From the NCBI RefSeq assembly GCF_052425735.1, contig NC_135760.1:25296001-25360000 (forward strand): DNA of 64,000 bases. The letters run 5' to 3'. Position 1 is the first letter of the stretch. The number at the start of each line of letters is the position of its first letter. The notes beneath the pieces are model-generated. The model saw only the letters and a program-made list of their open reading frames with translations. It made no database searches and was not told where the DNA came from. Below, piece by piece: positions 2,111 to 57,810 of the stretch. The position numbers were made by a program, and so were the translations under genes. This stretch comes from Oculina patagonica. Taxonomy: Eukaryota.

Positions 2111-4116
2111 ATCAAATACATTCTGACCGCAGTAGAAATTGCAGGTGACGAAATGAATTAATTTGTCATCGGCATTCTCTCACATGTCACGTGAAGTTTC
2201 TGTTCGAAAAATCTATTTAGAACTTATATGTAGGAAAAAAAAAAACTACTCAGAATAGAAATAACTAAACGAGCTGAAAAGTAACCATAATTAAAGTGCT
2301 AAGACTAGGTCGTACATGTGATTACTAAGATACTAAAGGAGATAAAAAACAAAATTTAAGATACGAGAAGAAAAAGAGAATAGAATTTGAAAAGTTACAG
2401 AAATATGCATGTTTTTATGTTGGCCATGGGTTGCCTAGTTTTATTTCAAACTGCTTTTAAAACGTACAAAACCCTGCCTTAAGGAAGCGACGTTTTCAAA
2501 GATTCCGTGGAAAGGATTCCCTCGCACTCCCCGATAAGATCGCCCCCTGGGGCGCTTATTAAGCTCTAACTCAAACCCCCCGGGGAGCATCATTTAACCA
2601 CGAGTCACGGCATCTATTCCTTGCTACATCAGTATTCATTTTCGTTTATTTTTTAGTGACAATGACCAGCACTGGCTTGGCCTTTTCTGGCGGTGGTATT
2701 CGGTCAGCGGCATTCTGCTCTGGAGTCTTGCGCAGACTGCTAGAGAGTGAAGTTGAGGTGGATTACTTGAGCTGTGTATCCGGGGGTGGTTACACAGGCA
2801 CAGCCTACCTGGACTGGAAATACAGAGAGGAGAGACGGCAAGGAAGCGACGGGGAAGCCCGAAGAGATTGGCACAAGGAGTTCTTTGACCACATGAGATA
2901 TAGGACAGGATACATCTGCAACTGGAAGAAGCCATTCCAAGGAATCTTCGATACAATAATTCTGTCCTGCCTTGTTATCGAGGTCGCATTCGTGCAGCCT
3001 TTGATCATATGGGGATCGTACGCATGCCCAATAGCCTTCATGATCGACGTCCTCTTTGGAAAGTACTTACGTGACAAGGTGGACTGCGATGCTGAGGCGA
3101 AAGCGTCAGCGGAAGCATCCGGTAACATGACTGATGCTGCGTTGTCTAAATTCCAGGCCATCCGAAGACATTGCCTCGCTCGACAGGGAACTGACAAGAT
3201 TTACACCGTCATACTTTTCGCTGCTCTGTTCCTCTTATTTATCTCATTTTATTTTCTTAATCGATTAAACCGGCTTTCTCCACTTCAGAGTTTTTTCGTC
3301 CGCCTTAGTCAGTACACGTTTGGTGCGTTTCTGCTTCTCACTTTCATCCCGTTTAGCATTCATGACTTCTTCAATAACATCCCGCTCTGGGCAAAGATCC
3401 TGCTCGTGCCTTTGTGCATAATACTGTGGTTGGTTCTTCCCCTGCTACGAAGCAAAACATCCTATGTTGTGATTATTTTGTTTTATTCTTATGTTACTCA
3501 CTGGAAGGTGTACGAAGGACAAGAAATTGCAATTGGCATCGTGTTTTCTTACAAGCTATTTCATCGGTTGCTTTTCGCATCCGGCTTTGTCTTGTGGATT
3601 GTCCCTATAGTGGCTGCAATGCACGAGAGACTTGTTCACATCTATAACAGGTTAGTAAAGGTTTCGTATATTGATCAGTCGAAGACAGTTTTCCGAAAGA
3701 TCATTGTATAAGAGAGAGAACGCGGGGAGAACGCCCAGATAACTGTGTAGTCCTTTGTGATATATTTTTAGCACACACGGTGGCTATTTCAGGTTTTTGT
3801 AACTAAGTTAGTTTTTTCTTCTTCTTCCTTCTTCTTTGCCTTCTTTGGGATTGTACATACAGGTAAACAATCATGGCAGGCTACAAGAAGGCCCAAGTTT
3901 GGGAATACACACGGTCTAAACGAGGCGGCAAGCGACATGGGTGGGCGATGAGAAGCCTGGGGCGGACAACTCCTTCTTGCAGCTTTGCCACTCGCGCGTT
4001 TATTCCTAAACATGAGCTTGCTCGCAGGCTACATTCATGGTAATGGCATTGTCTCTTTCAGCCACTCATCTGCAAAAATGCAAACATGTTTTCCACGAAC
4101 AGTGTAAATAAATCTC

Positions 4117-4870
4117 TTTTTCCTCGCGAAGCGAGGCCGAAGGCCGAGCGTAGCGGGGTGTATAATTTTGTCCCTCAAAGGGCTCAGGCGGGATGAAATC
4201 TCGTGTGGAGTTTACGGTCATATATATATATATATATTTGTGAGCTTGGTGTGTGGCGGAAATGACGTCACACGGCCGCGCGCTGGTGGCCTGATGGTGT
4301 GAGGCGTCGAACTTGAAATCAGATCTTCGGGACTGAGGGCGGGGGTTCGAATCCGGCTAGGGTTTTTTTATTTATTTTTTATTTATTTATTTTTTATTAT
4401 TATTTTTTTTGTGGGTTCGAATCCTGAGCCTTTCATTTTTATCGTTTTTCTTTTCGGATTAAAATAAAACTGATTTCCACATAATACTCCCTCAACGCCT
4501 ATTCAGGCTATAAACCTTTCATCGCCATCAGGGGCGCGCGGGCGGAGGGTTCGAATCCTCCTGCCGTTCGTTCTTCTTTTTTTTTTTAATGCCCTCAAAT
4601 AAATGTCCAAAATGCGACTATCCAATAATTTGTCGATGATTTTGAAAATAGCCTGCGCTTCCCAACGCTTTATACCTCTTTACGAACCAGAAAGAGCCGC
4701 CATCTTCAAAGCGGAGTAGACCCTGGGAACGAGGGTGTCGCGGCCATGCCCGTTACTAGGCAACAATAACAAATCACCGGTTAATAATCCACTCCTTATT
4801 TATAACACCCCCCCCCCTCCCCCTCCCCAACCCAGAGCTTCGCGAAGCCCTGCGAGTCACGTATTACTAG
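4117..4870 (+). mobile_element. Helitron/Helentron-like non-autonomous insertion in intron 1 of copy A, carrying tRNA-like A/B boxes
   Basis: Absent from copy C intron 1. Begins in a T-run with cctcgcgaagcgagg, contains (TA)n at ~4219-4236, and ends with the palindrome gcttcgcgaagc then ...tattaCTAG|tt; no TSD seen. Confidence 0.55.
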
Positions 4871-6561
4871 TTAAGTTATTATTGCGAAGATCCTAAAAGT
4901 ATGTAACCTCCTCTGCAGACGCTCTTTGAGCTCGTCACGCAATCTCCCCAAAAGTTTGCGTGACGAGACAAATAGCGTCTAGGAGACACCTAACGTGGAA
5001 TTCAAAACATCGACCTTTCTATTTTAAGATGGAGACTTCAGAGAGCGTTTTATCACCGCGAGGGGGTGGGATCAACAGGATGTGCAGGGATCGGGTTACA
5101 GGACACGTTTGCTCTGTGGACATGTCTATCGTCGACAAAGCAAGGGATTCGAGAGGAGGAGAAACCCTTGACACTTGCAGATCTGAAAGGCGTGAAGCCT
5201 GAATACTTGGCCAACATTGTGGTCAATCGCTGGAAGAAAAGCAAATCGTCCCAGCACAGCTATGAGCTTCTGACAATGTCTCCTTCAGGAATTGAGCGTA
5301 TAGATCGCCACCCAAACAACAAACAGTTAAAGGCAAACTGGAGCCGGAGGATGTGAAGTTATCAGATGCTATGGCCACCTCGGCGGCGGCACTTTCTACT
5401 CATATGGGCAAATATGATTACTCGGTTAAAGGGCTGACTCGTCTCCATACAATTCTTGGACTCGAAATGGGTGCCACCACGATAAGCGACATTAAATCAG
5501 TGAGAAGGGAAAGTTGCACATTGAGGGTATGTTAGCCTGCTTAACGTATGTAATACGCACTAGTTTAGGCGTTGTCTTCTTCCCACGGGCGAGCGGGTTG
5601 CGTGTCCATCGAATGTTATTCGGTAACGCCATGAAATTTCGTGCCAAATGGGGTTAGCGAAAATGGAAAGACAGGTCGACATTTGGTCCTACACAGAGCT
5701 TTTAACATTAATAAAGTTTTAACAAGCCAAGCTCTTTCAAAGAGAGAGTACAACTTTTCCTGGAATTACTTTACTTGCAGGATTGTATTTTTGCTGTTAG
5801 ATGCCAAAAGGACGTGCCTAGAACATGGACATAGTTACTTGGAATTTAGATTTATCGGTCCATATTTATTAAAGATGCAAAAGGGACCTTATTTATTGTC
5901 ATACATTAAGAAATATTTTCAGCTCTAGACAGCATTTAGTCCACAAAACCCTCATATGCTTTGCTTCCAGCTCTAAGCTGTTTTCGTTTTAATTTCTAGA
6001 GTAATTGGTACCCAGCCTGATACTTCAAAGTTGTTCCATGATTAACCATTCTATTTCTTTTAATTGCTAATTCACAGATATTCCTTCCATGTGTTGTGGA
6101 TGTTCTGCGTTGTATGCCATTAATAGTTGTCCCGGCCCTTTACCATGGTTCAGAACCATCCGTTAAAATAGGAGTAATAATCTTCTTTGTAGTACATCTT
6201 CTACTGGTCTTCATTGCTCTCATTGACACAGGAGCGGAACAACCAAGATGGTGGGAGAAAGTAGCCAGGTAAGGGTAAAATAAAAACAATTACTGTAATC
6301 ACGATTTCTCGCGCCCTCGAGTTTTCGAACCTACTGATAATTTGAAAAAAGAAGTTTTCCTTGGATTTGCTTCAATAAGTCAAACACTGCAATTCTTCCT
6401 CCGATTTCTCGAATCAATTTTCGTTTTTCTTGGAGGTTTGAGAAACAGGGACTTCACTCTGAAGCACTAAAAAGAATGCAGATTGAGAAGCAACATCTCT
6501 TGTACCTGTCACGCCCTCAGTCCCTCCCCTGCTCGAGAGCAACTTCGTTCCCAGGGTACCT

Positions 6562-6664
6562 TAGTCTAATCCCTGAACTCTTCTGCCCCGCCCTATGTAG
6601 GGGTTAATCCCGCCTGCGTTCAACCTCTATAGGGCGGGGGAAGGAGAGTTCAGGGACTGGACTA
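6562..6664. mobile_element. ~100-bp fold-back MITE in intron 3 (shared with copy C at ~36226-36329)
   Basis: tagtctaatccctgaactct...ccccgccctat / atagggcgggg...agagttcagggactggacta inverted repeat. Confidence 0.65.
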
Positions 6665-8481
6665 CGGGTTGGCTGAACGGACAGATTTGCACCGAAAAAT
6701 TCCACACTGATGACGAAAAACGACCCGAGCACTAAACTATCGAGTTTAATCCTAATCATGAGTCAACATGCGTTACTGTTGCTGTATTTTTATTTCAGAT
6801 GGTTCATAGTGCATATTTCTTTCGTCTATTTTGTGAGAGAAATGTTTTCCAAGGAAAACACTGGCCCAATGCCGCCACCTATACTGCTTCTTAGCGATGG
6901 AGGCCATATTGAAAACCTTGCTATTTTACCGCTGATAAAGAGAAGGCTTCGAAGGATTGTTGTTGTTGATGGTGGTTATAAGCATGACGACCAATATTAC
7001 GGAGACAGCCTTTTGAATGCACTGATGCTTGCTCGTACCAAGCTTAACTGTTCGTTTCTAAGTGAAGACGGCCAAGACGTTATTTTCAACCTCTTGGAGA
7101 CGTTTGTGAGACCAAAGACAGGAGGAAAGCCGCATTATTATAAGTTTGTAGTTCTTTTCTTCGCTTGGGTGATTTTACAGTCTATACAACATCTCAAGTA
7201 TAATTATTTAAATTAAAAAAATAAAAGTAGTATTAGGGGGAAAGGTAGGTACAAGGATTCTGAAACAATCGCACCTCTTTTCAGATGATACACTTTTATG
7301 AGACTAATTTCATGTTCCCGCTTAGGGTTTGGGGATAGGGTGACACGGGATGGAATATAGAAGAAATGCCAAAATGGACCCCAAGAAATTAAAGGTTGCC
7401 ACGCCTGTTTAAGAGAAGTATCCTGGTAGCTAAATGGAGTTTACAGGCTACCATCACGAGAAAATATCAACTTACAGTACAGTTAGGGAGATTATCCACT
7501 ATACCAAGACTGACTAAGGTCTCTTGACACAATTCTGTTTTCAATGCAATGAGCCAGTGGAAAATTGTGGAGATGCAAATTACATTTCGTTTTGCACTAT
7601 ATGACCCCATTCGTTGAAAAAATATAATATTTCCGGGTGAGGCTCAACAAGATTTAATACTGAACAGTACAGGCAGCAGCAATCAGTGGGATGTAGAAAG
7701 CTGGAAAAGAAAACAAGTAACATACACGTTTCCTTTGCTTGCCAACCAGCTTAAATGTTCTCCGAAATAACTACAGAGTACAAACTATAATAATCTTAAA
7801 ATTAAACCCTTGTAAATGCTCCCTTTGTTGCGTTTTCAGATTCAAGGTTCGTTACCAAAGCGATGAATTCGTTGAAGAAGGCGAAGGAGAAATTCTACTT
7901 ATCGTACCAAGAGATCCGCAACATGGCGTCAGTGAGGAAATGGATGGAAATCGTTCGACCAATTTGCATCCTTTCGACGCACCCGACGGTGCGTTTTTCA
8001 CACAAGATGAAGTCAATAAATTGACCCTCTGCTGCTGCGAGTGCTGTCACCGACAAGCTTGTCAGGGCTTGTCCAAGATATGTTGTAACGTCTTTCCACG
8101 GCACAGCACTGCCAATCAGTTCTTCACATCCCGGATGTTCTCGGCGTATCACTGTGAAGGGTACCGCGCGTGCGTAGATGCTAATGCTGTTGGATTTTTG
8201 AGAAATGGTGACAGAGAAAGGGAGCAAAACTATTATGTTAATATTAATGTGTGACAAAAATAACCGTAGAAAGAGTGTACGCGCATCATGTGATGTCGCC
8301 TGTGAACCTTGCCAAGTGTTTCATAACAGTGCAAAAAGAAAGAAGGAGGTCAAGATTCGGGAAGATTGCGAAAAACGAGTTGAAAAAATTGGACCAACTT
8401 TCCAATACACCCTATTCGTGACGGAGCACCTTAAAATATTTCTAAAATATTTATCTAGTCAGTTTTCTGAAAGTACTTTAA

Positions 8482-15474: not shown

Positions 15475-15898
15475 TCACACAATGCTAACATAATCATTTT
15501 GCTCCCTTTCTCTGTCACCATTTCTCAAAAAGCCCGCAGCATTGGCATCTACGCATGCTCTGTACCCTTCACAGTGATACGCTGAGAACATCCGGAATGT
15601 GAAGAACTGATTGGCAGTGCAGTGCTGTGGAAAGACGTTACAACATATCTTGGACAACCCCTGACAAACTTGTCGATGACAGCACTCGCAGCAACAGAGA
15701 GTCAAGTTATTGACTTCATCTTGTGTGAAAAACACACCGTCGGGTGCATCGAAAGGATGTACATTGGTTAAACGTTTTCCATCCATTTCGTCGCTGACGC
15801 CATGTTGCGGATCTCTTGGTACGATAAGTAGCTGGATAAGTAGAATTTCTCCTTCGCCTTCTTCACCAAATTCATCGCTTTGGTAACGAACCTTGAAT
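15475..15898 (-). pseudogene. Phospholipase copy D, orphan exon 5
   Basis: Acceptor ttcag then FKVRYQSDEFGEEGEGEILLIQLLIVPRDP...CCCECCH...FPQHCTANQFF; no exons 1-4 upstream. Exon 4 was removed by a deletion at ~17025 relative to copy E. Confidence 0.85.
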
Positions 15899-16412
15899 CT
15901 GAAAGAGCAACACAGGGAGAATTTACAAACGGGATAATTTAAAGATATATAAATATTTTGTACTCTGCATTGATATCGGAAAACATTTAAGCAGGATGGG
16001 AGAAAGAAAGCGTGTATTTTACTTGTTTTCTGTTCTATTTGTTGACTATTTTTCTAGATAGCAAGACTTGTGGACAATGAAGAGACTCTCTTACCGAATT
16101 CGTGTTAACTCTCAAGGAACTGTTTTAATTTCTCAAGGGAATACTTTTCGCTGGGGGCCATAAAAACGTCACTCAATAGGACTGCGTCACCACTTCCGAT
16201 ACCGAAGTGTTATCTATTGTTTGTGTTCTGTTTTTTCGATTTGATGCGTGTGTTAACTATGGAAAGGCGATGACCTCAACAAAAGAAAAAGGTACAAGGC
16301 GGGTAATTTCGTTGGCCCTGTCCGCGTCAGACTACAGTCTATAATTTTTTCCATTTTCACGTGTCGCTCGTCATCTAGCCTTTGCAAATTAAAGATAGGT
16401 ATTTTTCAAAGA

Positions 16413-22423: not shown

Positions 22424-25400
22424 TCACACAATATTAACATCATCTTGCTGCCTTTCCCTGTCACCATTTCTCAGAAAGCCCGCAGCATTGGCATCTACGC
22501 ATGCGCGGTACCCTTCACAGTGATACGCCGAGAACATCCGGGATGTGAAGAACTGATTGGCAGTGCTGTGCTGAGGAAAGAAGTTACAACATATCTTGGA
22601 CAACCCCTGACAAGCTTGTCGATGACAGCACTCGCAACAGCATAGGGTCAACTTATTGACGTCATCTTGTGTGAAAAACACACCGTCGGAAACATCAGAA
22701 GGATGCATATTAGTCAAACGATTTCCATCCATTCCGTCACTGACGCCTTGGTCCGGATCTCTTGGTGCGACAAGGAGAATTTCTCCTTCGCCTCCTTCAC
22801 CGAATTCATCGCTTTGGTAATGAACCTTGAATCTGAAAATGCAACAAAGGGAACATTTCTAAAGGGGATAATTTAAAGACTATAATTATTCTGTACTTTG
22901 CATTGATATGTAAGACAGAGCTGTTCCATGAGACTACCGTGAAGTCAGTTCTTTAGTTATGGAGAAGAACCTAGAAAGAATAAATTTCCAAATCATACAA
23001 TTCACGTATCAGCCGGCATGTCATGAAGACGGTAGTTCAGGGATGCCTCTTGCACGGTTCATGGGCGGAAAAATAACGAATCACGGACACAGATATCAGT
23101 TTTTATATTTATATAATTATATTTGAGATATTGCAAAATCACCCAAACGAAGAAAAAAAGTACAAACTTGTAATAACGCGGCTTTCCTCCGGCCTTTGGT
23201 CTCACAAACTTCTCCAAGAGATCGAAAGTAACATCTTGGCCGTCTTCACTTAGAAACGAACAGTTAAGCTTGGTACGAGCAAGCATCAGTGCATTCAAAA
23301 GGCTGTCTCCGTAGTATTGGTCGTCATTCTTATAACCACCATCAACAACAACAATCCTTCGTAGCCTTCTCTTCAACAGCGGTAAAATAGCAAGGTTTTC
23401 AATATGGCCTCCATCGCTAAGCAGCAGTATAGGTGGCGGCATTGGGCCAGTGTTTTCCTTGGAAAACATTTCTCTCACAAAATAGACGAAAGAAATGTGC
23501 ACGATGAACCACCTGAAAAATAATATTGCACGAAAAACGCATTTCACTAAGAGAATGTTCTCTTGCACATGCTGACTCATGATCGGAATTGGACTAGATA
23601 GCGCATGAGGTGCTCTTGTCATATTACGTCAACAAGGGAGGTAATAGTGAAGAAATTATTCAATATGACACGAGCGTGGGACAAAGAAAAAATCTGAGTC
23701 ACCGGCGGGAATCGAACCCATGGCCTCCCAGATACCGGTTGGGCGCTCTAACCAACTGAGCTACGAGAGACTCGTTGTGAGCTGGGCTATTTACTAGGTT
23801 GATATATGACACGCGTCCTGCATACTGCTAGGATCAGCAATGTCGAAATCATCGAATGTGTAGTAAATAATAAAGATAGTAAATTTCAAGCTCGGTGAGG
23901 TAATTTCAAGGGAGGTAATATGTTGCAAGTTGTGGCAACATGTTGCGCAAAGTAGACATGAGTTCAACTTTGTGCAATACGTTGTCGCAACTTGCAACAA
24001 GGGAGGTAATACGGGCAGCAACTTGCAGTGCAACATGTTGCAAGACAAGTTGAAAGAAAATATTGCCCGTATTGCGGGGCCTTGAACGGGGAAAAACCAT
24101 ATATGGCAACACGTTTGGAAACGCGTGCACACACAGTTGCAGATGACGAATTCAACTACGCGACCACGTGCTAAGGCAAAAAAAAAAACAGAACAACATT
24201 TTAATCTAGCCACTTTCCACTAAAGGTTCAAATAAGGCGTGACAGGTGGAAGACATGCTGTTTTCTCAGGCTGCATACTTTTAAGACCTTCATAGTGGAT
24301 TCCCAATTTCTCAGAGAACCTCCAGGGGAAACTAAAATGGGTTCGAGAAATCGGGAGTGCGATAAATCAAAAGTTAAATTGCAGTGTTTGAAGCAAATCT
24401 AAGAGAAATGACTTTTTTCGCGTTATAGGGGTTCGAGAAATCGGAATTACACTAATTGTTTTTATTCTAACCCCTACCTGGCTATTTTCTCCCACCATCC
24501 TGGTTGTTCCGCTCCTGTGTCAATGAGAGCGATGAAGACCAGTACAAGATGTACAGCGAAGAAGATTATTACTCCTATTTTAACGTACGGTTCTGCATCA
24601 TGGTAAAGGGCCGGTACAACTACTAATGGCAGACCACGCAGAACATACACAAGACACGGAAGGAATATCTGTGAAATTGCAAAATAGCAGCAGTTATCAG
24701 GCAGGGTACAAAAGTACAAAAATCTGGAAATAGGCCTTGTCACGGTTTTCGACGCCATCTTGACGAGTAGGCAAAGCGGGTAGAAATTACAGTGTTTGTA
24801 TGGGAATCCGATGGCAAATATCTTTTACAAAAATTGAATTTTGGACAACTTATGAATTATAAAGTTAAGATACTAGGCAAAAGTTTTTATTTGCCGAGTT
24901 TGAAGGATGTAGCTGGGCTAGAAAGCGTTCAGTTACCTTTTTAATTTCTCATACACTTGTCTATAATTTTTCCCGCGAACAGCGTCAATCATGCGGAAAA
25001 AAATATAGGCAAATAATATATGACCGACACCTTCGGGACCGTGATTTAGTGTCCGTAATACAGAATGTCCGCAATAGCTGGAGTTATTTTCAGTAATTTT
25101 TATTTGCCGGGACTTAAACTCCGTCCGTAATAACGGGGTGTCCGTAATAGCGAGGTGTCCGCAAGGCGGGAGTTGACTGTACTAATTAATTACTAGTACA
25201 CATTGCCTTCATATGCTTTGCTCCGAAAGGTTGTCTTTTTTAATAGGCCTTAACATACAGAGGACACGCAACCTGCTTGCCCCATGCTTCGCGCTCGCCT
25301 TTGAGAGGAAGGGAATGCCTAGGAAGTCTAGGGCGTGTTACCTACGTTCAGGAGGCCAACATACCCTCAATGTACATCCTTCCCTTTTCACCGATTTAAC

Positions 25401-27338
25401 GTCGCTTATCATGGTGGCACCCATTTCGAGTCCAAGAATTGTATGAAGACGAGTTAGCCCTTTAACCGAACGATCATATTTGCCCATATGAGTCGAAAGC
25501 GCCGCCGCCGAGGTAGCCATAGCATCTGATAACTTTATATCCTCGGGCTCCAGTTTGCCTTTGAACTGTTCCTTGTCTGGGTCACGATCAATACGCTCTA
25601 TTTCTGTGGGCGACATTGTCAAAAGTTCATAACTGTTCTGGGACGCCTCGCTTTTCTTCCAACGGTTAACCACAATGTTGGCCAAGTATTCAGGCTTCAT
25701 GTTTTTTAGATCTGCTAGTGTCAGTGGTCTCGCCTCCTCTTCACCCGCTTTATTAGCCAGCGTCAGACATGTCCAGAGAGTGCACACATCGTGCAGCTCA
25801 ATCCCGGAACATCCAGATAGTCCCAGGCCCTTGCGGTGATAAAACGCTCTCTGAAGCCTCCATCTGGAAAAGAACAGTCAATGTTTTACGTTCCATGTAA
25901 GGTATCTCCTACATAGTCGCTTTTCGAGCTCTATTTGCACTGATCGTAAAGAAAACATGTTTTCATTTTTGCAGATGATTGGCTGAAAGAGACAATACCC
26001 TTTCCATAAATGTAGCCTACGAGCAAGCTCATGTTTAAGTATGCACGCGCGAGTAGCGAAGCCGTATGAACGAGTCCTCTGCCCAAGAGTTCTCCTTGCT
26101 GGCCTTCTTCGCTGGCCGACTCGTCTACTCAGCCTTTATTCCCAAATTTTTCTGCTCGCAAGCAACAATGATTGGTTATATATATCCAGTCCCAGACTTT
26201 AAAGACAAAACTGGCAAATCCACTGTGTGTGCTATAATAAATCGAAAGGATGAATAGGACTGCACAGTTCTACACGCGTTCTGTCTCTTATCTAATGGTC
26301 TTTTTGACAAACGGTCTTTGACTGATCAATATACAAAACCTTTATTTACCTGTTATAAATGTGCACAAGTCTCTCATTCATTGCAGCCACTATAGGGACA
26401 ATCCACAAGACAAAGCCGGAGGCGAAGAGAAACCAATTAAATAGCTTGTCGGAAAATGTGATGCCATTTCTAAGTTCTTGGCCCTCGTACACCTTCAATT
26501 GCGTCACATAAGAATAAAAGAAAATAATCAGGACATAGGATATTTTGCTTCGTAGCAGGGGAAGAACCAACCACACTATTACGCCAACAGGCACAACCAG
26601 GATCTCTGCCCACAAAGGGATTTTATAGAAGGAATCATGAATGCCAAACGGGATGACAGTGAGCGCCAGCAACGCACCAAACGTGTATTGGGTGAGACGA
26701 ACGAAAAGCCTCTGAGGTGGAGAAAGACGTGTTAATCGAACAAGGACATAAAATGTGATAAACATGAGGAACAGAACAGCGAATAGTATAAAAGTGTAGA
26801 TCCTATCAGTTCCCTGTCGAGCGAGGCAATGCGTTAGGATGGCCTGGACCTCAGACAACTCAGCATCAGTCATGTAACTAGATACTACCGCTGATGCTTC
26901 CGCCTCAGCATCGCAGTCCACTTTGTCACGTAGGTACTTTCCAAAAAGGAGGTCGATCATGAAGGCTACTGGGCATGCGTACGATCCCCATATGATCAAT
27001 GGTTGCACGAAGGTGACCGTAATAATAAGGCAAGACAAAATAATTGTGTCGAAGATTCCTTGGAATGGCTTCTTCCAGTTGCAGACGTATCCTGTCCTAT
27101 CTCTCATGTGGTCAAAGAACTCCTTGTGCCAATCTTTGCGGGCTTCCCCGTCGCTTCCTTGCTGTTTTTCCTCTCTGTATTTCCAGTCCAGGTAGGCTGT
27201 ACCTGTATAACCACCCCCGGATACACAGCTCAAGTAATCTACCTCTACCTCACTCTCTAACAGTCTGCGCAAGACTCCAGAGCAGAATGCCGCTGACCGA
27301 ATACCACCGCCAGAAAACGCCAAGCCAGTACTAGACAT
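22424..27338 (-). CDS. TM-containing patatin/cPLA2-like phospholipase, copy B (intact, ~810 aa)
   Basis: Minus-strand exons 27338-26350 (989), 25863-25365 (499), 24668-24478 (191), 23512-23168 (345), 22832-22424 (409); sum 2433 nt = 810 aa + stop; all GT-AG; catalytic motifs GGGIR, CVSGG and SDGG intact; several hydrophobic helices in exons 1 and 3. Confidence 0.9.
23660..23900 (-). mobile_element. Interspersed repeat with tRNA-like head (SINE-like) in intron 3 of copy B
   Basis: Minus strand reads tagctcagttggttagagcg...gggttcgattcccg (23765-23700); acceptor and anticodon stems are imperfect. Confidence 0.6.
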
Positions 27339-32402: not shown

Positions 32403-34227
32403 ATGACCCGCACTGGCTTGGCCTTTTCTGGCGGTGGTATTCGGTCAGCGGCATTCTGCTCTGGAGTCTTGCGTAGACTGCTAGAAAGTGAAGTAGAGGT
32501 GGATTACTTGAGCTGTGTGTCAGGGGGTGGTTACACAGGCACAGCCTACCTGGACTGGAAATACAGAGAGGAAAGACGGAAAGGTGGCGATGGGGAAGCC
32601 CGAAGAGATTGGCACAAGGAGTTCTTTGACCACATGAGAGATAGGACAGGATACGTCTGCAACTGGAAGAAGCCATTCCAAGGAATCTTCGACACAGTAA
32701 TTTTGTCTTGCCTTGTTATTGCGGTCGCCTTCGTGCAACCATTGATCATATGGGGATCGTATGCATGCCCAATAGCCTTCATGATCGACCTACTATTCGG
32801 AAAGTACCTACGTGACAAAGTGAACTGCGATGCTGAGACTAATGCGTCAGCGGCAGCATCCGCTAACATGACTGATGCTGCGTTGTCTGATATCCAGGCC
32901 ATCCGAAGACATTGCCTCGCTCGACAGGGAACTGACAAGATTTACACCGTCATACTATTCGCTGTTCTGTTCCTCTTATTTATCTCATTTAATTTTCTTA
33001 ATCGATTAAACCGGCTTTCTCCACTTCAGAGTTTTTTCGTCCGCCTTAGTCAGTACACGTTTGGTGCGTTTCTGCTTCTCACTTCCATTCCGTTTAGCAT
33101 TCATGACTTCTACAATAATATCCCGCTCTGGGCAAAGATCCTGCTCGTGCCTTTGTGCATAATAGTGTGGTTGGTTCTTCCCCTGCTACGAAGCAAAACA
33201 TCCTATGTTATGATTATTTTCTTTTACTCTTATGTTACTCACTGGAAGGTGTACGAGGGAAAAGAAATTGCAATTGGTATCATGTTTTCTTACAAGCTAT
33301 TTCATCGGTTGCTTTTCGCATCCGGCTTTGTCTTGTGGATTGTCCCTATAGTGGCTGCATTGCATGAGAGACTTGTTCACATCTATAACAGGTTAGTAAA
33401 GGTTTCCTATACTGATGGGCCAAATACAGTTTCTTCAAAAGACCATTATATAAGAGAAAGAACGCAGAAAGAACGCCAAACAGCTGTGTAGCCCTTTTCG
33501 ATATGTTTTTAGCACACACTGTAGCTATGTTTTTAGCACACACTGTAGCTATGTCAGTTTTCCTTCTAGGTTTAGAATTGTATATACAAGTATAAAATCA
33601 TGGCAGACTACAAGTAGGCCAAAGCCTTGAAATACACGAGGTGTAAACGAGGCGGCGAGCGACGTGGGTGGGCGATGAGAAGTCTGGGGCGGACGACTTC
33701 TTCTTGCGGCTTCGCCACTCGCGCGCGTATTCCCTTAACGTGAGCGTGTTCGCAGGCTACAATCATGACAAATTTACTGTCTCTTTCAGTCAAACATCTG
33801 TTGTTAGAACAACAAATGTTTCAACCTGTTGTACGGAATAGAGCCTTGGACTTTCAACATGTTGAATGGCATATTTCAACATTCAACATCACACCATACA
33901 CTAATCAACCTTTGTTAAACAGCAGTAGCAACATTTGCAGTTGTTGCACAACAAATGTTGAACCCTGCATCATTGGCTTAAATAGATTAAATAAATCTTT
34001 TTTCCAATAATTTTACTCTCGGCTTAAGACATTGTAACTAGCTATTTTTAATTTTTTTTAATTATTTTTATTATCTTTTTTCTTACACTAGTTCCCATTG
34101 TTTTTATAATGTAATTTAATTATTGTCATGCGCTTTTTACATGAGCCTCTGTCTCGGATAGAGAGGGCAACCTCATCCCGCGCCATGACATTAATTGATT
34201 GATTGATTTATTGACTGATTGATTGAC

Positions 34228-34264
<37 letters not shown>

Positions 34265-37200
34265 CATTCATTCATTCATTGGTTGATTGATAGGAAGTTA
34301 TTGCGTACGCTCTTTGGCCCCGTCACGCATTCGTCTCCCAATAACCTTACCTCATGAGCATAGTTACTTACCTCAAAACATCGACCTTTCTTTTTGCAGA
34401 TGGAGACTTCAGAGAGCGTTTTATCACCGCGAGGGAGTGGGACCAAAAGGATGTGCAGGGATCGGGTTACAGGACACCTTTGCTCTGTGGACATGTCTAT
34501 CGTCGACAAACCAAGGGATTCCAGAGGAGGAGAAACCCTTGACACTTGCAGATCTGAAAGGCATGAAGCCTGAATACTTGGCCAACATTGTGGTCAATCG
34601 CTGGAAGAAAAGCAAATTGTCCCAGCACAGCTATGAGCTTCTGACAATGTCTCCTACAGGAATTGAGCGTATAGATCGCGACCCAAACAACAAACAGTTT
34701 AAAGGCAAACTGGAACCGGAGGATGTGAAGTTATCAGATGCTATGGCCACCTCGGCGGCGGCGCTTTCTACTCACATGGGCAAATATGATTACACGGTTA
34801 AAGGGCTGACTCGTCTCCATACGATTCTTGGACTCGAAATGGGTGCCACCACGATAAGCGACATTAAATCAGTGAGAAGGGAAAGTTGCACATTGAGGGT
34901 ATGTTAGCCTGCTTAACGTATGTAATACGCACTAGTTCTTCCCACGGGCGAGCGGGTTGCGTGTCCATTAAATGTTATTCGGTAATTAACGCCATGAAAT
35001 TTCGTGCCAAATCCGGTTAGCGAAAATGGAAAGACAGGTCGACATTTGGTCCTACACAGAGCTTTTAACATTAATAAAGTTTTAACAAGCCAAGCTCTAT
35101 CAAAGAGAGAGTACAACTTTTCCTGGAAATACTTTACTTGCAGGATTGTATTTTTGCTGCCGGGGTTAGATGCTAAAAGGACGTGCCTAGAACATGGACA
35201 TAGTTACTTTGTATTTAGATTTATCGGTCCATATATATTAAAGATGCAAAAGAGACCTTACTTATTGTCATACATTAGGAAATATGTTCAGCTCTAGACA
35301 GCATTTAGTCCACAAAACCCTCATATGCTTTGCTTCCAGCTCTAAGCTGTTTTCGTTTTAATTTCTAGAGTAATTGGTACCCAGCCTGATAATTCTAAGT
35401 TGTTCCATGATTAATCATTCTATTTCTTTTAATTGCTAATTCACAGATATTCCTTCCATGTGTTGTGGATGTTCTGCGTTGTCTGCCATTAATAGTTGTA
35501 CCGGCCCTTTACCATGGTTCAGAACCATCCGTTAAAATAGGAGTAATAATCTTCTTCGCTGTACATCTTGTACTGGTCTTCATCGCCCTCATTGACACAG
35601 GAGCGGAACAACCAGGATTGTTGGAGAAAGTAGCCAGGTAAGGGTAAAATAAAAACAGTTACTGTAATCACGATTTCTCGCGCCCTCGAGTTTTCGAACC
35701 TGCTGATAATTTGAAAAAAAAACAGTTTCCCTTGGATTTGCTTCAATAAGTCCCCAGGGGGGGGGGGGGGGTACTTGCAGTATACATGACGGGGGAGTCC
35801 GACGGAGCTTTATATTGCGAACCCAAAAAAATCCCTGACATCGAAATTTTCTACCCCAAAAAGTACAAGACCTAGCACCTCTATACTAATTTATTCAATA
35901 AAACAGACTTTAAGATCTAAAAAAATATATGACAGATTTCTTGACCCAAAAAAATACCGAGGGTGTAAATTTTCAACCGAAAAAATACGTCGGACCTCCC
36001 CGTCATGTATACTGCAAGTACCCCCCCCTTCCCTGGGAATAAGTCAAACACTGCAATTCTTCCTCCGATTTCTCGAATCAATATTCGTTTTTCTTGGAGG
36101 TTTGAGAAATAGGGACTTCACTCTGAAGCACTAAAAAGAATGCAGATTGTGAAGCAACATCTCTTGTACCTGTCACGCCCTCAGTCCCTCCCCTGCTCGA
36201 GAGCAACTTCGTTCCCAGGGTACCTTAGTCTAATCCCTGAACTCTTCTTTCCCGTCCTATGTAGGGGTTTAATCCCGCCTGCGTCCAACCTCTATAGGGC
36301 GGGGGAAGGAAAGTTCAGGGACTGGACTACGGGTTGGCTGAACGAGCAGATTTGCACCGAAAAATTTCACACTGATGAAGAAAAACGACCCGAGCACTAA
36401 ACTATCGAGTTCAATCCTAATCATGAGTCAACATGCGTTACTGTTGCTGTATTTTTATTTCAGATGGTTCATAGTGCACATTTCTTTCGTCTATTTTGTG
36501 AGAGAAATGTTTTCCAAGGAAAACACTGGCCCAATGCCGCCACCTATACTGCTTCTTAGCGATGGAGGCCATATTGAAAACCTTGCTATTTTACCGTTGT
36601 TAAAGAGAAGGCTACGAAGGATTGTTGTTGTTGATGGTGGTTATAAGAATGACGACCAATACTACGGAGACAGCCTTTTGAATGCACTGATGCTTGCTCG
36701 TACCAAGCTTAACTGTTCGTTTCTAAGTGAAGACGGCCAAGACGTTATTTCTGACCTCTTGGAGACGTTTGTGAGAGCAAAGACAGGAGGAAAGCCGCAT
36801 TATTATAAGTTTGTAGTTCTTTTCTTCGCTTGGGTGATTTTACAGTCTTTATAACGTCTCAAGTATAATTAATTATTTAAACTAGTAGTAATTGGCAATT
36901 AGGGGAGTGCGTTCGGTAGCGTGGGGTGATAGGGGAGGGGGGCAGGGAAAGCTGGAGGCAAGGGGTGGGAAGTAGAATATTATATTTTCATATTTTCTTA
37001 ATATTTGAGGTCTCTTTGTCATGTGCAAACTACAATGAAAAGTCCATGCAGAAAAGGTGACATTGCCAAGCTGATGAAAACTGATCTGCTTGTACCAACC
37101 CATCTTTCTAAACCATAAGAGAAGAATTTAAAGCCTTCTGATATTTGTGCCAAGCGAAGTCGCTAAAAATCTTTAATGAATCCAAATAAAGTACAATGTA

Positions 37201-39712
37201 TATTACCCTGGAAAATGTTCGTATAGTTTAATATTTGTAATATATAATAACAGTAACAAAAGGCTACTGAACTGAAATGTAGACATTCCAAACATTTTCG
37301 GATACCAGTCCATTAGTAACAACTTTTTGTTTCCTTACAATCATAAAATACAATAGAGTTTAAATATAAAATGGCTCAACAACTTCGAACAGTCTGCATT
37401 CAGCTTGTCAATGCTTTAATAGTGGCCGAAGGGAATATATTGGTATATTATAGAGTCTCACAAGTCTGTACACAAGGAGAAGTTGAATCGGTTGAGGTAA
37501 GCAGCTGAGTTGACACATCACAACTCGGTGTTATCACCGGGGGCGAATCGCAGCGTCTGTTTCCAAGAAAAATTTGCCACTGATGCTCTGAATAATATTG
37601 ATACAACTCCCGCGGGTACAACTTCACGCCTACGTTGGAGAAAACTGCGAAAAATATTCGAAATATGCGAAGGAAAGAACGAAGAAAGCACGCACGAAAG
37701 CACATTCGAAAGTACAAGGATTGCCAGCTCTGAGCCTGTTATCCTTTCATCGCTGTTGTTGCGTTTTTGCGAGAAACAAAAATAAACTTACCATTTCCCG
37801 TCGCGTCGCTGCGAAGATCTGCGAAGAAACTCATATAATTTTTCACGAACGGCCACTATTTTAACGACGTTCGGTGGCGGAATAAAACTATACTTCTCTG
37901 GATAAAACTCTGTTATGCTTTCCATGTCATTTTCGGTATTATTTTAACTTCGGATACACGTTTCGAGCAAAACAGGTTTGTGCGAATCCAAAATGGACGC
38001 CATATTGAAAGCACATGGCACATGGCATGGAGATGACGTCATTCGCCCCTGAAAAAATTTCTGGGGCGGCCAAATTGATGACCATACAAAGATAGCCCAA
38101 AAAACTCGAATAAAAACGGAATTAGGCAGCGTTCTCCTTCGTCGAACGCAATAAGAAAATGAAAGTAATATTAGGGGGTAGGGTATGTATGAGGTTCCTG
38201 GAACTGTCGCACCTCTCTTCAGATAATACACTTTTATGAGACTTATTTCAAGTACATGCTTTGGGTTTGGAGATAGGGTGATTAGGATGGAATATACAGT
38301 TGAACCCCGGTAACTCGAACTCTGAGGGGAAATGAAAAACAGTTCGAGTTAGCGGGGTCGATTGAATATTTAATTTGCCTAGTTAATAATTGATAGTTTA
38401 CACTGATTTTTCAGCTTTTCAGTAGACAGTGCAAATTAAACTTATCTCGTCAGAAACTCTAACAGGATCATAAATTCTTATGATACGAGGGGAAAATGGC
38501 TTCAAATACGTGATCTGTTCGTTGCACTAATCAATGGGCATAAGTGGGGAGTTGCAGGAACCGAAATTCGAGTTATCGGGGCAAATTTGACCCAAATTTT
38601 GATCAAGGGAAACGAAATTTAGTTCGAGTTAGCGGGGTTTTCGAGTTATCCGAGTTCGAGTTAACCGAGTAAAAATGACTGAAAAGTGAGTTCAAATCCA
38701 AGGGAAATGGTAGTTTGTTCGAGTTAGTGGGGTTGTTCGAGTTATCCGAGTTCGAGTTACCGGGGTTCTACTGTACAAGGAATGCCCAAATGGACCCCAA
38801 GAAATTAAAGGTTGCCACGCCCGTTAACGGGAAGTATCCTTGTGGCTAAGTGGAGTCTATTTACCATCACGAGTAAATATCAACTAAGGAAGTTATCCAC
38901 TTATAGAAAGTATCAGGGTTAAACTCTGTGTACAGGCACTCAACCCGGCTTCAACTTCAACTTCTTCTTGACACAATTCTGTTTTCTATGTTTCCATGCA
39001 ATGAGCCAGTGGAAAATTGTGGAAACGCAAATTACTTTTTTTGCACTTTTTGACCCCATTCGTTGAAAAATGTCCGGGTAAAACGCAAAAAAATTCAACA
39101 CCAAAAATACATGTACAGGCAGCAGCAATTTCATGTAGAAAGCTGGAGAAGAAAACATACACGTTTCCTTTGCTTGCCAACAAGCTTAAATGTTCTCCGA
39201 TACAACTGCAAAGTATACATGAATTCATTAAATAATTAATTAACTAAATAAATTATTCTGTTTGTAGATGCTCCCTTTTTTGCTTTTTGAGATTCAAGGT
39301 TCGTTACCAAAGCGATGATTTCGGTGAAGAAGGCGAAGGAGAAATTCTACTTATCGTACCAAGAGATCCGCAACGCCACGGTGGCGTCGGTGACAGAATG
39401 GATGGAAATCGTTCGACCAATGTACATCCTTTCGATGCACCCGACGGCGTGTTTTTCACTCAAGATGAAGTCAATAACTTGACTCTCTGCTGCTGTGAGT
39501 GTTGTCATCGAAAAGCTTGTCAGGGGTTGTCCGAGATATGTTGTAACGTCTTTCCACAGCACAGCACTGCCAATCAGTTCTTCACATCCCGGATGTTCTC
39601 GGCGTATCACTGTGAAGGGTACCGCGCATGCGTAGATGCCAATGCTGTTGGCTTTATAAAAGATGGTGAAAGAGAAGAGGAGCAAAATTATTATGTTGAT
39701 ATTAATGTGTGA
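32403..39712 (+). CDS. TM-containing patatin/cPLA2-like phospholipase, copy C (intact, ~814 aa)
   Basis: Exons 32403-33391, 34400-34898, 35447-35637, 36464-36808, 39292-39712 (or 39268-39712 with the alternative in-frame acceptor); sum 2445 nt; open frame; catalytic motifs intact. Confidence 0.88.
34193..34290. repeat. (GATT)n / (ATTC)n microsatellite
   Basis: Read directly from the sequence. Confidence 0.95.
35753..36037. mobile_element. hAT-like MITE with 8-bp TSD in intron 3 of copy C
   Basis: TSD AATAAGTC at 35745-35752 and 36038-36045; TIR cccaggg...gtacttgcagtatacatgacggg; empty site in copy A at ~6374. Confidence 0.9.
36882..38151 (-). mobile_element. Helitron/Helentron-like insertion in intron 4 of copy C
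   Basis: Absent from copy A (~7212). On the minus strand it starts with the hairpin gcgttcgacgaaggagaacgc and ends ...ctaCTAG; no TSD. Confidence 0.5.
38297..38773. mobile_element. Tc1/mariner-pogo-type MITE with TA TSD
   Basis: TA|cagttgaaccccggtaactcgaac ... gttcgagttaccggggttctactg|TA; empty site in copy A at ~7357. Confidence 0.9.
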
Positions 39713-55439: not shown

Positions 55440-57496
55440 TCACACAATGTTAACATTATCATTTTGCTCCCTTTCCTTGTCACCATTTCTCAAAAAGCCA
55501 ACAGCATTGGCATCTACGCATGCGCGGTACCCTTCACAGTGATACGCCGAGAACATCCGGGATGTGAAGAACTGATTAGCAGTGCTGTGCTGTGGAAAGA
55601 CGTTACAACATATCTTGGACAACCCCTGACAAGCTTGTCGGTGACAGCACTCGCAGCAACAGAGAGTCAAGTTATTGACTTCGGCTTGTGTAAAAAACAC
55701 GCCGTCGGGTGCATCGAAAGGATACAAATTGGTCGAACGATTTCCATCCATTCTGTCATTTACGCCATGTTGCGGATCTCTTGGTACGATTAGTAGAATT
55801 TCTCCTTCGCCTTCTTCACCGAATTCATCGCTTTGGTAACGAACCTTGAATCTGAAAAAGCAACAAAAGGAGAATTTACAACCGGGATAATTTCAAGGCT
55901 ATTTAAATATTCTGTACTCTGCATTGATATCGGAGAACATTTAAGCAGGATGAAGAGAAAGAAAGCGTGCGTTTTACTTGTTTTCTGCTCCTTTTTTCGA
56001 CTATTTTGCTTGTTAAAGTAAAATAGTAAGACTTGTGGACAATGAAGTCACTCTCTTACCGAATTCTTGGTAACTCTCAAGGAACTGTTTTAATTTCTCA
56101 AGGGAATACTTTTCGCTGTGGGTGATAAAAACGTCACTCAATAGGAATGCATCAGCACTTCCGATCCCGAATTGTTACAAGGCGGGCAATTTCGATGGCC
56201 TTGTCCGTGTCGAGACTACAGTCTATTTTTTTTTTCGATTTTCACGCGTCGCTCGTCATCTAGCCTTGCAAATTAAAGGTTGGTATTTTTCAAAGATCTC
56301 TGCCATTCATCGATTGAATCGCTTAGTTTTATCATGCCTGTGTTTATATGACGTTAAATGATGCAAAATATTAATATGCATTTCCACAATTTTCCAGCGA
56401 CACATTGCATGGGAAACATAACTGTGCTATGACGCTACCATGATCATGGTTGGTTTAGTTATGGTGACGAACCTAGTAAGAATAAATTTTAAAATCATAT
56501 AATTTTAATTTTGAGTATTACTTTAACGTATACATAGTACTGTTAATTATACTACACATGGTGGCTGAAATAAGTTGAACTGTCATCTGGTGATGCTGGA
56601 CAGTAAAATTGTCGGCCATGAATTGAACGAGCATGGACTGAAATTGTCCAACATCCTGAAAATATTTTAAAATTTGACCTTTGTACTCTTGGATATGGAA
56701 GCCGGGTTAATTGCCTGTACATAGAGATTAACTAGAATACGTTTCTTTAAGTGGAAAACTTCATTAAGATTTACACGTGATTGTCAGGTTGCCTGTAAAC
56801 TCCATTTAGCCACGAGTGTACTTCTCGTAAACGGGTATGGCAACCTTCTAATTCGTGAACGTTATTCATGGGGTCCATTTGCGTACGTTTCCTCTAAAAC
56901 AACCTCCCGTATAAAGCTAAATTACAACTTATGCCAGCCTATCTCAATCCGTAAGCTAGTACTTGAAATTGGTTTTATACAAGCGTATTCTTTTACGGGA
57001 AGAGTGACGTACCCGATACCTCATACCCACCTTACCCTACTATACTACTTTCATTTCAAGTAGTGCTACTTGAGACCATAGTTAGAAGAGAGGACTAACT
57101 ATGTTTAGCAGATGCAAAATCGCCAAAGCAAAAAGAGAAAGAACTACAAACTTGTAATAACGCTGCTTTCCTCCTGTTTTTGGTCTCACAAACTTCTCCA
57201 AGAGGTCGAAAATGATGTCTTGGCCGTCTTCACTTAGAAACGAACAGTTTAGCTTGGTACAAGCAAGCATCAGTGCATTCAAAAGGTTGTCTCCGTAGTA
57301 TTGGTCGTCATGCTTATAACCAGCGTCAACAACAACAATCCTTCGTAGCCTTCTCTTTAACAGCGGTAAAATAGCAAGGTTTTCAATAAGGCCTCCATCG
57401 CTAAGCAGCAGTATTGGTGGCGGCATTGGGCCAGTGTTTTCATTGGAAAACATTTCTCTCACGGAATAGACGAACGAAATGTGTACGATAAACCAC
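55440..57496 (-). pseudogene. Phospholipase copy E, exons 4-5 only
   Basis: Exon 4 at 57496-57152 (SDGGLIENL, VVVDAG substitutions) and exon 5 at 55851-55440. Intron-3-like remnant to ~57760, then unrelated sequence; exons 1-3 are not found in 57500-64000. Confidence 0.85.
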
Positions 57497-57810
57497 CTGA
57501 ATTTAAAAAAATAGCAATAATAACGTATATGCTCAGGATTTGCCTTCAGTGTATTTTGCATGTCATGTTGCGTCAATTATCATAGTTTTTTTTAGCGTGA
57601 ATGTCAAATGTCTGTTGAGCCAACGTAGTTCCAAGTGCCCTGGGAACCAGATTGCTCTCGAGCTTTAGAACTGAAGAGTGAAATCGAGATTACTCGAGCC
57701 TCCTTGAGGAAAGAAAACTAGTTCGATAAATCGAAAGTGCGAGTATCGGAGGTAAAAGTGCAGATATTTCTTAGTGTATGATAAATTGTCAGGCTGTCAA
57801 GCATCTTTAA

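Follow-up and report, generated by a model that had tools for sequence, protein, structure and literature searches.

Introduction

An intron-bearing coral gene whose product carries, in order, the motifs of a bacterial lipase family raises the question of whether the animal obtained it from a bacterium or inherited it from early eukaryotes. The gene lies in a 64,000-nucleotide stretch of Oculina patagonica DNA (NCBI RefSeq assembly GCF_052425735.1, contig NC_135760.1, positions 25,296,001 to 25,360,000 of the forward strand), hereafter the window, whose own numbering is used below; it occupies positions 22424-27338 of the minus strand. An earlier note on this DNA, made from the letters alone, had proposed a horizontally acquired or patchily retained enzyme of transmembrane (TM) patatin type that gained introns and expanded. 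The best explanation, which we consider probable, is that this is a functional, transcribed coral gene for a membrane lipase resembling cytosolic phospholipase A2 (cPLA2), and that it belongs to an old eukaryotic lineage already present in animals before cnidarians and sponges diverged.

Gene structure and transcription

Exact splice solving against the window gave a five-exon gene at 22424-27338 on the minus strand, with GT-AG introns throughout and a product of 810 aa identical to P0164, the Oculina patagonica hypothetical protein ACROYT_G010660, in agreement with the initial view of an intron-containing animal gene. The start codon lies at 27338-27336 and the stop codon at 22426-22424, and introns 1 to 4 have phases 2, 0, 2 and 2. 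The exons are distributed as follows.

26350..27338, minus strand: exon 1, residues 1-329 plus 2 nt of codon 330, with GGGIR (residues 10-14, nt 27311-27297), the Ser40 codon (27221-27219) and TM block 1 (open reading frame (ORF) translation, Pfam, hydropathy and AlphaFold2 helices)
25365..25863, minus strand: exon 2, residues 330-496, encoding YNRWRL and the soluble middle of the catalytic domain, in which DAMATSAAALS lies (splice sites exact against P0164)
24478..24668, minus strand: exon 3, residues 497-559 plus 2 nt, with TM block 2, a two-helix hairpin
23168..23512, minus strand: exon 4, residues 560-674 plus 2 nt, with Asp593 in LSDGGHIENL (codon 23415-23413) and the LLKRRLRRIVVVDGG strand
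22424..22832, minus strand: exon 5, residues 675-810 and the stop, with CCCECCH (residues 739-745, nt 22642-22622), FPQHST (residues 760-765, nt 22579-22562) and then the ..FSAYHCEGY helix

The donor of exon 1 reads AG/GTAAAT (slash at the splice point; phase 2), and that of exon 2, at 25365, is backed by homologs. A model of 836 aa using the in-frame GT-AG pair 25342/24723 was dropped, as homologs and the database protein back 25365/24668. On the minus strand this pair would insert 26 residues between exons 2 and 3, and a minor isoform of that kind could exist.

No sequencing run for the window is catalogued as RNA. Four public runs were compared with the gene: three are DNA, with contigs crossing introns, and the fourth, X1, is probably RNA, by guess only. 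In a 411-nt contig from X1, position 22832 is followed immediately by 23168, so that intron 4 is missing, and the unusual donor of this intron, AA/GTTTGT, is confirmed. Because the contig skips exactly intron 4, transcription and splicing can be assigned to this locus or to an allele or paralog nearly identical to it.

Sequence motifs and the bacterial TM-patatin family

The motifs quoted in the earlier note were all recovered at 22424-27338 in the order given there.

Residues 5-23, minus strand: GLAFSGGGIRSAAFCSGVL
Residues 35-45, minus strand: DYLSCVSGGGY
Residues 443-453, minus strand: DAMATSAAALS
Residues 591-617, minus strand: LSDGGHIENLAILPLLKRR..IVVVDG
Residues 760-783, minus strand: FPQHSTANQFF...FSAYHCEG

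Hydrophobic blocks at residues 98-320 and 497-545 (hydropathy) lie between these motifs. In an alignment of 61 homologs, eukaryotic and bacterial, G11, G12, S40-G41-G42 and P761 are invariant, and R14, D593-G594-G595, E598 and the C-terminal FP...T...F...Y...G are at least 90% conserved. The protein combines an oxyanion-hole type motif, GGGIR (residues 10-14), whose three glycines are all invariant, with an aspartate motif of the D-G-G type, SDGG (residues 592-595). The elbow around Ser40 retains the last Gly of GxSxG, its first position being C, T, V or N in most members and G in Cyanophora. It had been remarked that the protein lacks the C2 domain of PLA2G4 and the GxSxG of PNPLAs, and both remarks stand: no C2 domain was found by Pfam, the protein beginning directly with a catalytic strand at residue 4, and in the elbow the first Gly is replaced (CVSGG).

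Profile searches placed the protein at the margin of known families. Pfam Patatin (PF01734) matches residues 6-60 with 28.1 bits against a cut-off of 27.7, which is marginal; NCBIfam gave no meaningful match on the exon translations, and a profile search of PDB sequences returned no lipase, only chance TM matches. The bacterial homolog P0257 scores 21.7 bits on PF01735, below the cut-off of 23.

The comparison of the ordered motif set with a widespread uncharacterised bacterial family was confirmed by alignments. Full-length homologs are bacterial proteins annotated as 'patatin-like phospholipase family protein' with an internal TM block, for instance in Methylomonas sp. MV1 (P0270), Flavobacterium defluvii (P0251) and the Bradyrhizobium/Mesorhizobium loci L001-L036. 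Their motifs follow the order GLALSGGGIRSA, DYLSTVSGGGY, AMA(I/T)SGAA, LSDGGH.(E/D)NLG and FPH..T.DQFF..QFEAYR.LG, and over the full length VGLALSGGGIRSA, VDYLSTVSGGGY, the TM block, LYRDRL, GTAMA(I/T)SGAA and LSDGGH.(E/D)NLG..ELL.RRC precede the FPH motif. A pattern scan with one genome per species found the family in at least 582 bacterial species. Matches were obtained in Alphaproteobacteria (Bradyrhizobium, Mesorhizobium and others), Beta- and Gammaproteobacteria, Acidobacteriota, Nitrospirota and Thermodesulfobacteriota, as well as in Planctomycetota, Verrucomicrobiota, Chlorobiota, Myxococcota and further lineages, amounting to more than 10 phyla.

Coral and bacterial proteins share the ordered motifs, the first TM insertion and the invariant S-GGGIRSA-F, S-VSGG, DGGH..N and FP...T elements, whereas their identity is only about 25%. 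Neither the second TM hairpin nor the CCCxCC motif of the coral protein occurs in the bacterial members, which often carry N-terminal extensions of 60-300 residues. The CCCECCH motif is specific to eukaryotes, CCCxCC being common to cnidarians, Sycon and protists and missing in bacteria.

Eukaryotic distribution, phylogeny and shared introns

Homologs were collected by an exhaustive phmmer search with exon 1 and by word-seeded protein searches. Within Cnidaria they occur in many Scleractinia, in Actiniaria, in the octocoral Dendronephthya and in the scyphozoan Sanderia; within Porifera, in the calcareous sponge Sycon ciliatum, as three clusters; and among protists, in Planoprotostelium and Protostelium (Amoebozoa), Cyanophora (Glaucophyta) and Gefionella (Malawimonadida). 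AlphaFold DB clusters add the accessions F4QCW7 and D2VMP7, which we take to come from a dictyostelid and from Naegleria, respectively. No bilaterian homolog appeared among the matches listed, these being protein searches and not genome scans. The P0111 protein of Planoprotostelium fungivorum (1727 aa) is a two-lipase fusion, in which the TM-patatin module (about 915-1630) is joined to Lipase_3 (PF01764) and fibronectin type III domains.

The Montipora ortholog matches Sycon with an E value of 2e-79, Protostelium with 2e-21 and bacteria with about 1e-12 to 1e-15. Unrooted maximum-likelihood trees were built under LG+C20+F+G4 from alignments of 79 and 40 rows. In both, one branch separates the named bacteria from the named eukaryotes, with a Shimodaira-Hasegawa-like approximate likelihood ratio (SH-aLRT) support of 100 for 79 rows and an ultrafast bootstrap/SH-aLRT support of 100/100 for 40 rows. 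The 40-row tree recovers monophyletic Cnidaria (100/99) with Porifera as their sister group (99/99), and the 79-row tree agrees with it. P0110, at the base of the eukaryotic side, comes from a contig that also carries DnaJ-X and GST genes, and on account of these neighbours we regard this contig as eukaryotic. On the 40-row subset, approximately unbiased (AU) tests rejected the grouping of Cnidaria with bacteria (delta lnL 42, p 0.0004) and that of Metazoa, here Cnidaria plus Porifera, with bacteria (delta lnL 23, p 0.015).

Intron positions point in the same direction. Oculina, Nematostella and Sycon have introns 1 (after ..YN/R) and 3, both of phase 2, in the same alignment columns. The two cnidarians also share intron 2 (phase 0), the Sycon intron lying 13 alignment columns off in a poorly aligned stretch. 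Intron 4 of Oculina is missing from Nematostella and located elsewhere in Sycon. Moreover, more than 10 ORF-called representatives stop exactly at the end of exon 1 of the query, which fits a widely conserved first intron. Judged from these alignments, the gene, together with at least two of its present introns, predates the cnidarian-sponge split.

The earlier note had named as support for transfer a tree with cnidarian sequences nested within bacteria and absent from most eukaryotes, and as evidence against it a broad, monophyletic eukaryotic distribution. It is the second pattern that was found: the split is supported at 100/100, and Sycon, Amoebozoa, Cyanophora and Gefionella all carry the gene. 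Acquisition by cnidarians is thus contradicted by the single eukaryotic group standing apart from bacteria, by the AU tests and by the introns held in common with the sponge. Since the tree, these tests and the shared introns agree, we place the gene in animals before cnidarians and sponges separated. The eukaryotic group, spanning Cnidaria, Porifera, Amoebozoa, a glaucophyte, a malawimonad and other protists, is homologous to the bacterial family and separate from it. An old eukaryotic gene would thus have been lost by most animals; in corals it has multiplied into tandem arrays. The other half of the original proposal, patchy retention with expansion, is upheld by the sparse eukaryotic distribution, by the additional copies in the window and by 39 exon-1 matches in the genome.

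Predicted structure and membrane topology

An AlphaFold2 model calculated from the homolog alignment reached a predicted local distance difference test (pLDDT) score of 86.7 and a predicted template modelling (pTM) score of 0.88. Its core beta strands comprise residues 4-8, 35-38, 388-420, 479-482, 588-593, 612-616, 644-647 and 673-696, and its long helices, within 91-337 and 493-543, coincide with the hydrophobic segments. Foldseek against the PDB gave human cPLA2 as the top match, with E values of 4e-3 or weaker, the weakness being due to dilution of the score by the TM inserts; against Swiss-Prot models, all 30 matches listed were cPLA2, phospholipase B (PLB; fungal lysophospholipases) or Spo1. 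VIA-align ranked cPLA2 highest, with Z 23.1 over 325 aligned residues for cPLA2 GIVD and Z 22.4 over 377 for cPLA2-alpha, followed by PlpD (Z 18.3, 232 residues), CapV (Z about 16, 273-277), patatin (Z 15.7, 286), VipD (Z 13.2, 265) and ExoU (Z 10.9, 242), unrelated structures reaching at most 6.6.

The likeness to cPLA2 (PLA2G4A, 1CJY; PLA2G4D, 5IZR/5IZ5) and to PLB/Spo1 (PF01735) is not confined to one region, aligned residues spanning the model from N- to C-terminus. The order of elements is the same, namely GGGxR, a Ser about 30 residues further on, a large insertion, an Asp strand of the D-G-G type and then an 'LL..R...I..D' strand, and the Ser-Asp dyad and the motif Arg are kept. Unlike these enzymes, the coral protein has no C2 domain and no sequence match to PF01735 or the PDB, contains a Cys-rich motif and a C-terminal FPxxST motif, and carries eight or so membrane-spanning helices inside the domain, which would make it an integral rather than a peripheral membrane enzyme. 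With classical patatin/PNPLA proteins (1OXW; PlpD, 5FYA; CapV, 9JEH; VipD, 4AKF; ExoU, 4AKX) it shares the superfamily fold (Z 11-18), GGGxR/K, the Ser nucleophile, the DGG Asp and a PF01734 match at cut-off over the N-terminal motifs. However, the structural scores are lower and the aligned lengths shorter than with cPLA2, most members of the TM-patatin family lack the first Gly of GxSxG, and the coral protein has the TM insertions.

The coral protein is thus part of the patatin/cPLA2 superfamily, as a divergent member whose closest structural kin is the cPLA2/PLB branch. Best hits to canonical PLA2G4/PLB proteins had been named as evidence against the earlier proposal; these are the nearest proteins by structure, whereas by sequence neither PF01735 nor any PDB entry matches. 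Such closeness supports a similar way of working and a distant kinship with cPLA2, not membership of that family.

According to the proposed topology, the soluble parts (about 1-90, 330-492 and 548-810) would assemble into one lipase domain, anchored in the bilayer by two helical insertions, one of about six spans (91-320) and the other a two-span hairpin (493-545). Both insertions have even span counts, which would leave the three soluble parts on the same side of the membrane. The cytosolic side is the most likely one, as the protein lacks a signal peptide and starts with the first catalytic strand.

Proposed mechanism and alternative explanations

By analogy with its structural relatives, the protein may be an integral-membrane phospholipase or lysophospholipase. 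Ser40 would serve as nucleophile and Asp593 as general base of a catalytic dyad, the backbone of the GGG stretch (GGGIR, residues 10-14) would form the oxyanion hole, and Arg14 might bind the lipid phosphate; in cPLA2-alpha, Arg200 has this function. The enzyme would draw a phospholipid or lysophospholipid from its own membrane and cleave the acyl ester as cPLA2 and PLB do, the overall reaction being hydrolysis or transacylation of glycerophospholipids or lysophospholipids of that membrane. The CCCECCH motif just before FPQHST is a plausible candidate for an S-acylation or metal site. That a working protein is made is suggested by purifying selection, with a ratio of nonsynonymous to synonymous substitution (dN/dS) of 0.25-0.36 among the three exon-1 copies of the window, and by the 39 genomic exon-1 matches, none of which has an internal stop.

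Several observations weigh against the interpretation favoured here. A few bases set the X1 contig apart from the window, and an allele or near-identical paralog may be its source. The coral elbow, CVSGG, has Cys in place of the first Gly of GxSxG; the PF01734 match is limited to profile positions 1-55 of 191, and PF01735 gives no match to the coral P0164 in Pfam. The protists sit on long branches whose order has weak support (46-94% bootstrap) and departs from the species tree. The absence from bilaterians, placozoans and ctenophores rests on the matches listed by word-seeded protein searches and not on genome scans. Finally, the tree is unrooted, since the part alignable with other patatins, only about 60 N-terminal residues plus the DGG strand, is too short for outgroup rooting, and a single, very old bacterial donor could still stand at the origin of the eukaryotic group.

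This last history, in which the whole eukaryotic group stems from one ancient bacterial donor, by early transfer or as an endosymbiont gene, followed by vertical descent and many losses, deserves serious consideration, and we rate it at somewhat less than an even chance. It agrees with the best explanation as far as animals are concerned and differs from it in giving the family a bacterial origin. The breadth of the bacterial family, with many Alphaproteobacteria among its species, the patchy occurrence in eukaryotes and the derived additions of the eukaryotic members, namely the second TM hairpin and the Cys motif, all speak in its favour. On the other side, the unrooted trees give no root position and no outgroup is reliably alignable, and the known family closest in structure, cPLA2/PLB, occurs mainly in eukaryotes. 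The deeper origin could therefore lie in an ancient bacterial donor, in transfer in the reverse direction or in descent from a common ancestor.

A second alternative concerns function and not ancestry. The protein might not be a phospholipase at all, acting instead as an acyltransferase or transacylase, as a lipid sensor, or as a non-catalytic membrane protein that keeps the fold. Its non-canonical nucleophile elbow could be read in this sense, and enzymes of the cPLA2 family (PLA2G4) are known for transacylase and lysophospholipase activities. We consider this unlikely, because Ser, Asp, GGG and Arg are 90-100% conserved across eukaryotes and bacteria, the paralogs are under purifying selection, and a pseudoenzyme would not be expected to retain the whole dyad together with the oxyanion hole.

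It could also be argued that the distribution arose by transfers between eukaryotes, such as one from a protist to an early animal, instead of by vertical descent with loss. The very patchy occurrence and the departure of the weakly supported protist order from the species tree would accord with such events. Nevertheless, the animal part of the gene tree follows the species tree and the introns are shared, and long branches with sparse sampling suffice to explain the disorder among protists, so that this scenario seems to us rather improbable.

A transfer of the bacterial TM-patatin specific to cnidarians or to animals, with later intron gain and expansion, can draw on the motif set and first TM block common to the widespread bacterial family, on the lack of bilaterians among the matches listed and on the bacterial clusters among the atlas feature neighbours, but it is very improbable indeed, given that named eukaryotes of at least five deep lineages group apart from bacteria, that Cnidaria are sister to Porifera, that both AU tests are negative, that introns 1 and 3 recur in the sponge, that the second TM hairpin and CCCxCC are found in cnidarians, Sycon and protists and not in bacteria, and that a coral protein is far closer to Sycon (1e-79) than to a bacterium (about 1e-12).

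Paralogs, repeats and gene neighbourhoods

Besides the studied gene, the old eukaryotic family is represented in the window by two complete and two partial copies.

About 2662-8230, plus strand: full five-exon paralog
About 32403-39709, plus strand: full five-exon paralog
15478-15903, minus strand: lone last exon
55443-57498, minus strand: exon 4-5 fragment

The two full paralogs show about 80% protein identity and stand head-to-head or tail-to-tail with the studied gene. In the 2662-8230 copy, the match to exon 2 is broken into two pieces that overlap (5027-5332 and 5302-5538), pointing to an indel or a frameshift.

The 39 exon-1 matches of the genome are arranged in tandem arrays. Ten lie on the chromosome piece C3 between 25.26 and 25.39 Mb, three of them in the window (G000:C3:25296001-25360000), and six on C560, probably the alternative haplotype of the C3 array. 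C5 carries seventeen, sixteen of them at 26.0-26.6 Mb, and the others are on C13 (five), C8 (three) and C11 (one). The copies at G000:C3:25261304-25262290, 61 kb away, and G000:C560:44661-45647 encode an exon-1 protein 100% identical to that of the studied gene, which would point either to a segmental duplication of very recent date or to a haplotype or assembly duplicate left uncollapsed.

Two introns of the studied gene contain repeats.

23569..23902, no strand assigned: high-copy repeat in intron 3, with a summed contig depth of 10^5-10^6 in the DNA runs against about 10^2 on exons
23696-23771, minus strand: tRNA-Thr(GGT)-like sequence inside the intron 3 repeat (ARAGORN)
24738..25238, no strand assigned: second high-copy repeat, in intron 2, with a summed depth of 10^4-10^5 in the DNA runs and many rearranged joints in contigs

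The tRNA-like element is most likely a tRNA-derived short interspersed nuclear element and not a working tRNA gene, because the 330 bases around it have a summed depth of 10^5-10^6.

Turning to the bacterial relatives, no gene neighbour is conserved across phyla in 69 bacterial loci. The neighbours are lineage-specific housekeeping genes, such as those for NtrC-type regulators, an M3 peptidase, an L,D-transpeptidase and PntB. PADLOC found no defence-system match for eight full-length family members, and a role as an anti-phage defence effector, of the CapV type of the cyclic oligonucleotide-based antiphage signalling system (CBASS) or another, was set aside on this ground and for want of a conserved defence neighbourhood. 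In Nitrospira sp. (L062:4211-5845) and four other Nitrospirota loci, the TM-patatin gene is preceded, at a distance of about 150 bases, by a gene for a classical soluble patatin that matches PF01734 over its full length (E 6e-13), and a HerA/DUF87-like ATPase is encoded on the other side; this is the sole neighbourhood hint and is restricted to Nitrospirota.

Significance

Neither the TM-patatin family nor its architecture, a cPLA2-like Ser-Asp lipase domain with two helical membrane insertions, was found described in the literature searched. A wider and decidedly tentative proposal, which we hold to be doubtful, is that these proteins form an ancient integral-membrane family of cPLA2-like lipases, new to that literature, which bacteria share with early-branching eukaryotes and which sponges and cnidarians retained while bilaterians lost it. 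The expansion into dozens of tandem copies in reef corals might then provide regulated membrane-cleaving effectors acting, for instance, in immunity, symbiont control or programmed cell death, comparable to the soluble patatin effectors of bacterial immunity.

The analysis removes a tempting call of horizontal transfer and replaces it with a better-supported history, that of an old eukaryotic family amplified in the coral to about 30-40 copies. The picture that emerges is of uncharacterised cPLA2-like lipases integrated in the membrane and belonging to a family of ancient, shared ancestry. For lipid enzymology, the family offers a candidate enzyme that would act from inside the bilayer with clear catalytic residues. 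For cnidarian biology, it adds a large gene family that expands in tandem; as far as the searches show, among animals it has been kept only in early-branching phyla, and in the stony coral it is strongly amplified.

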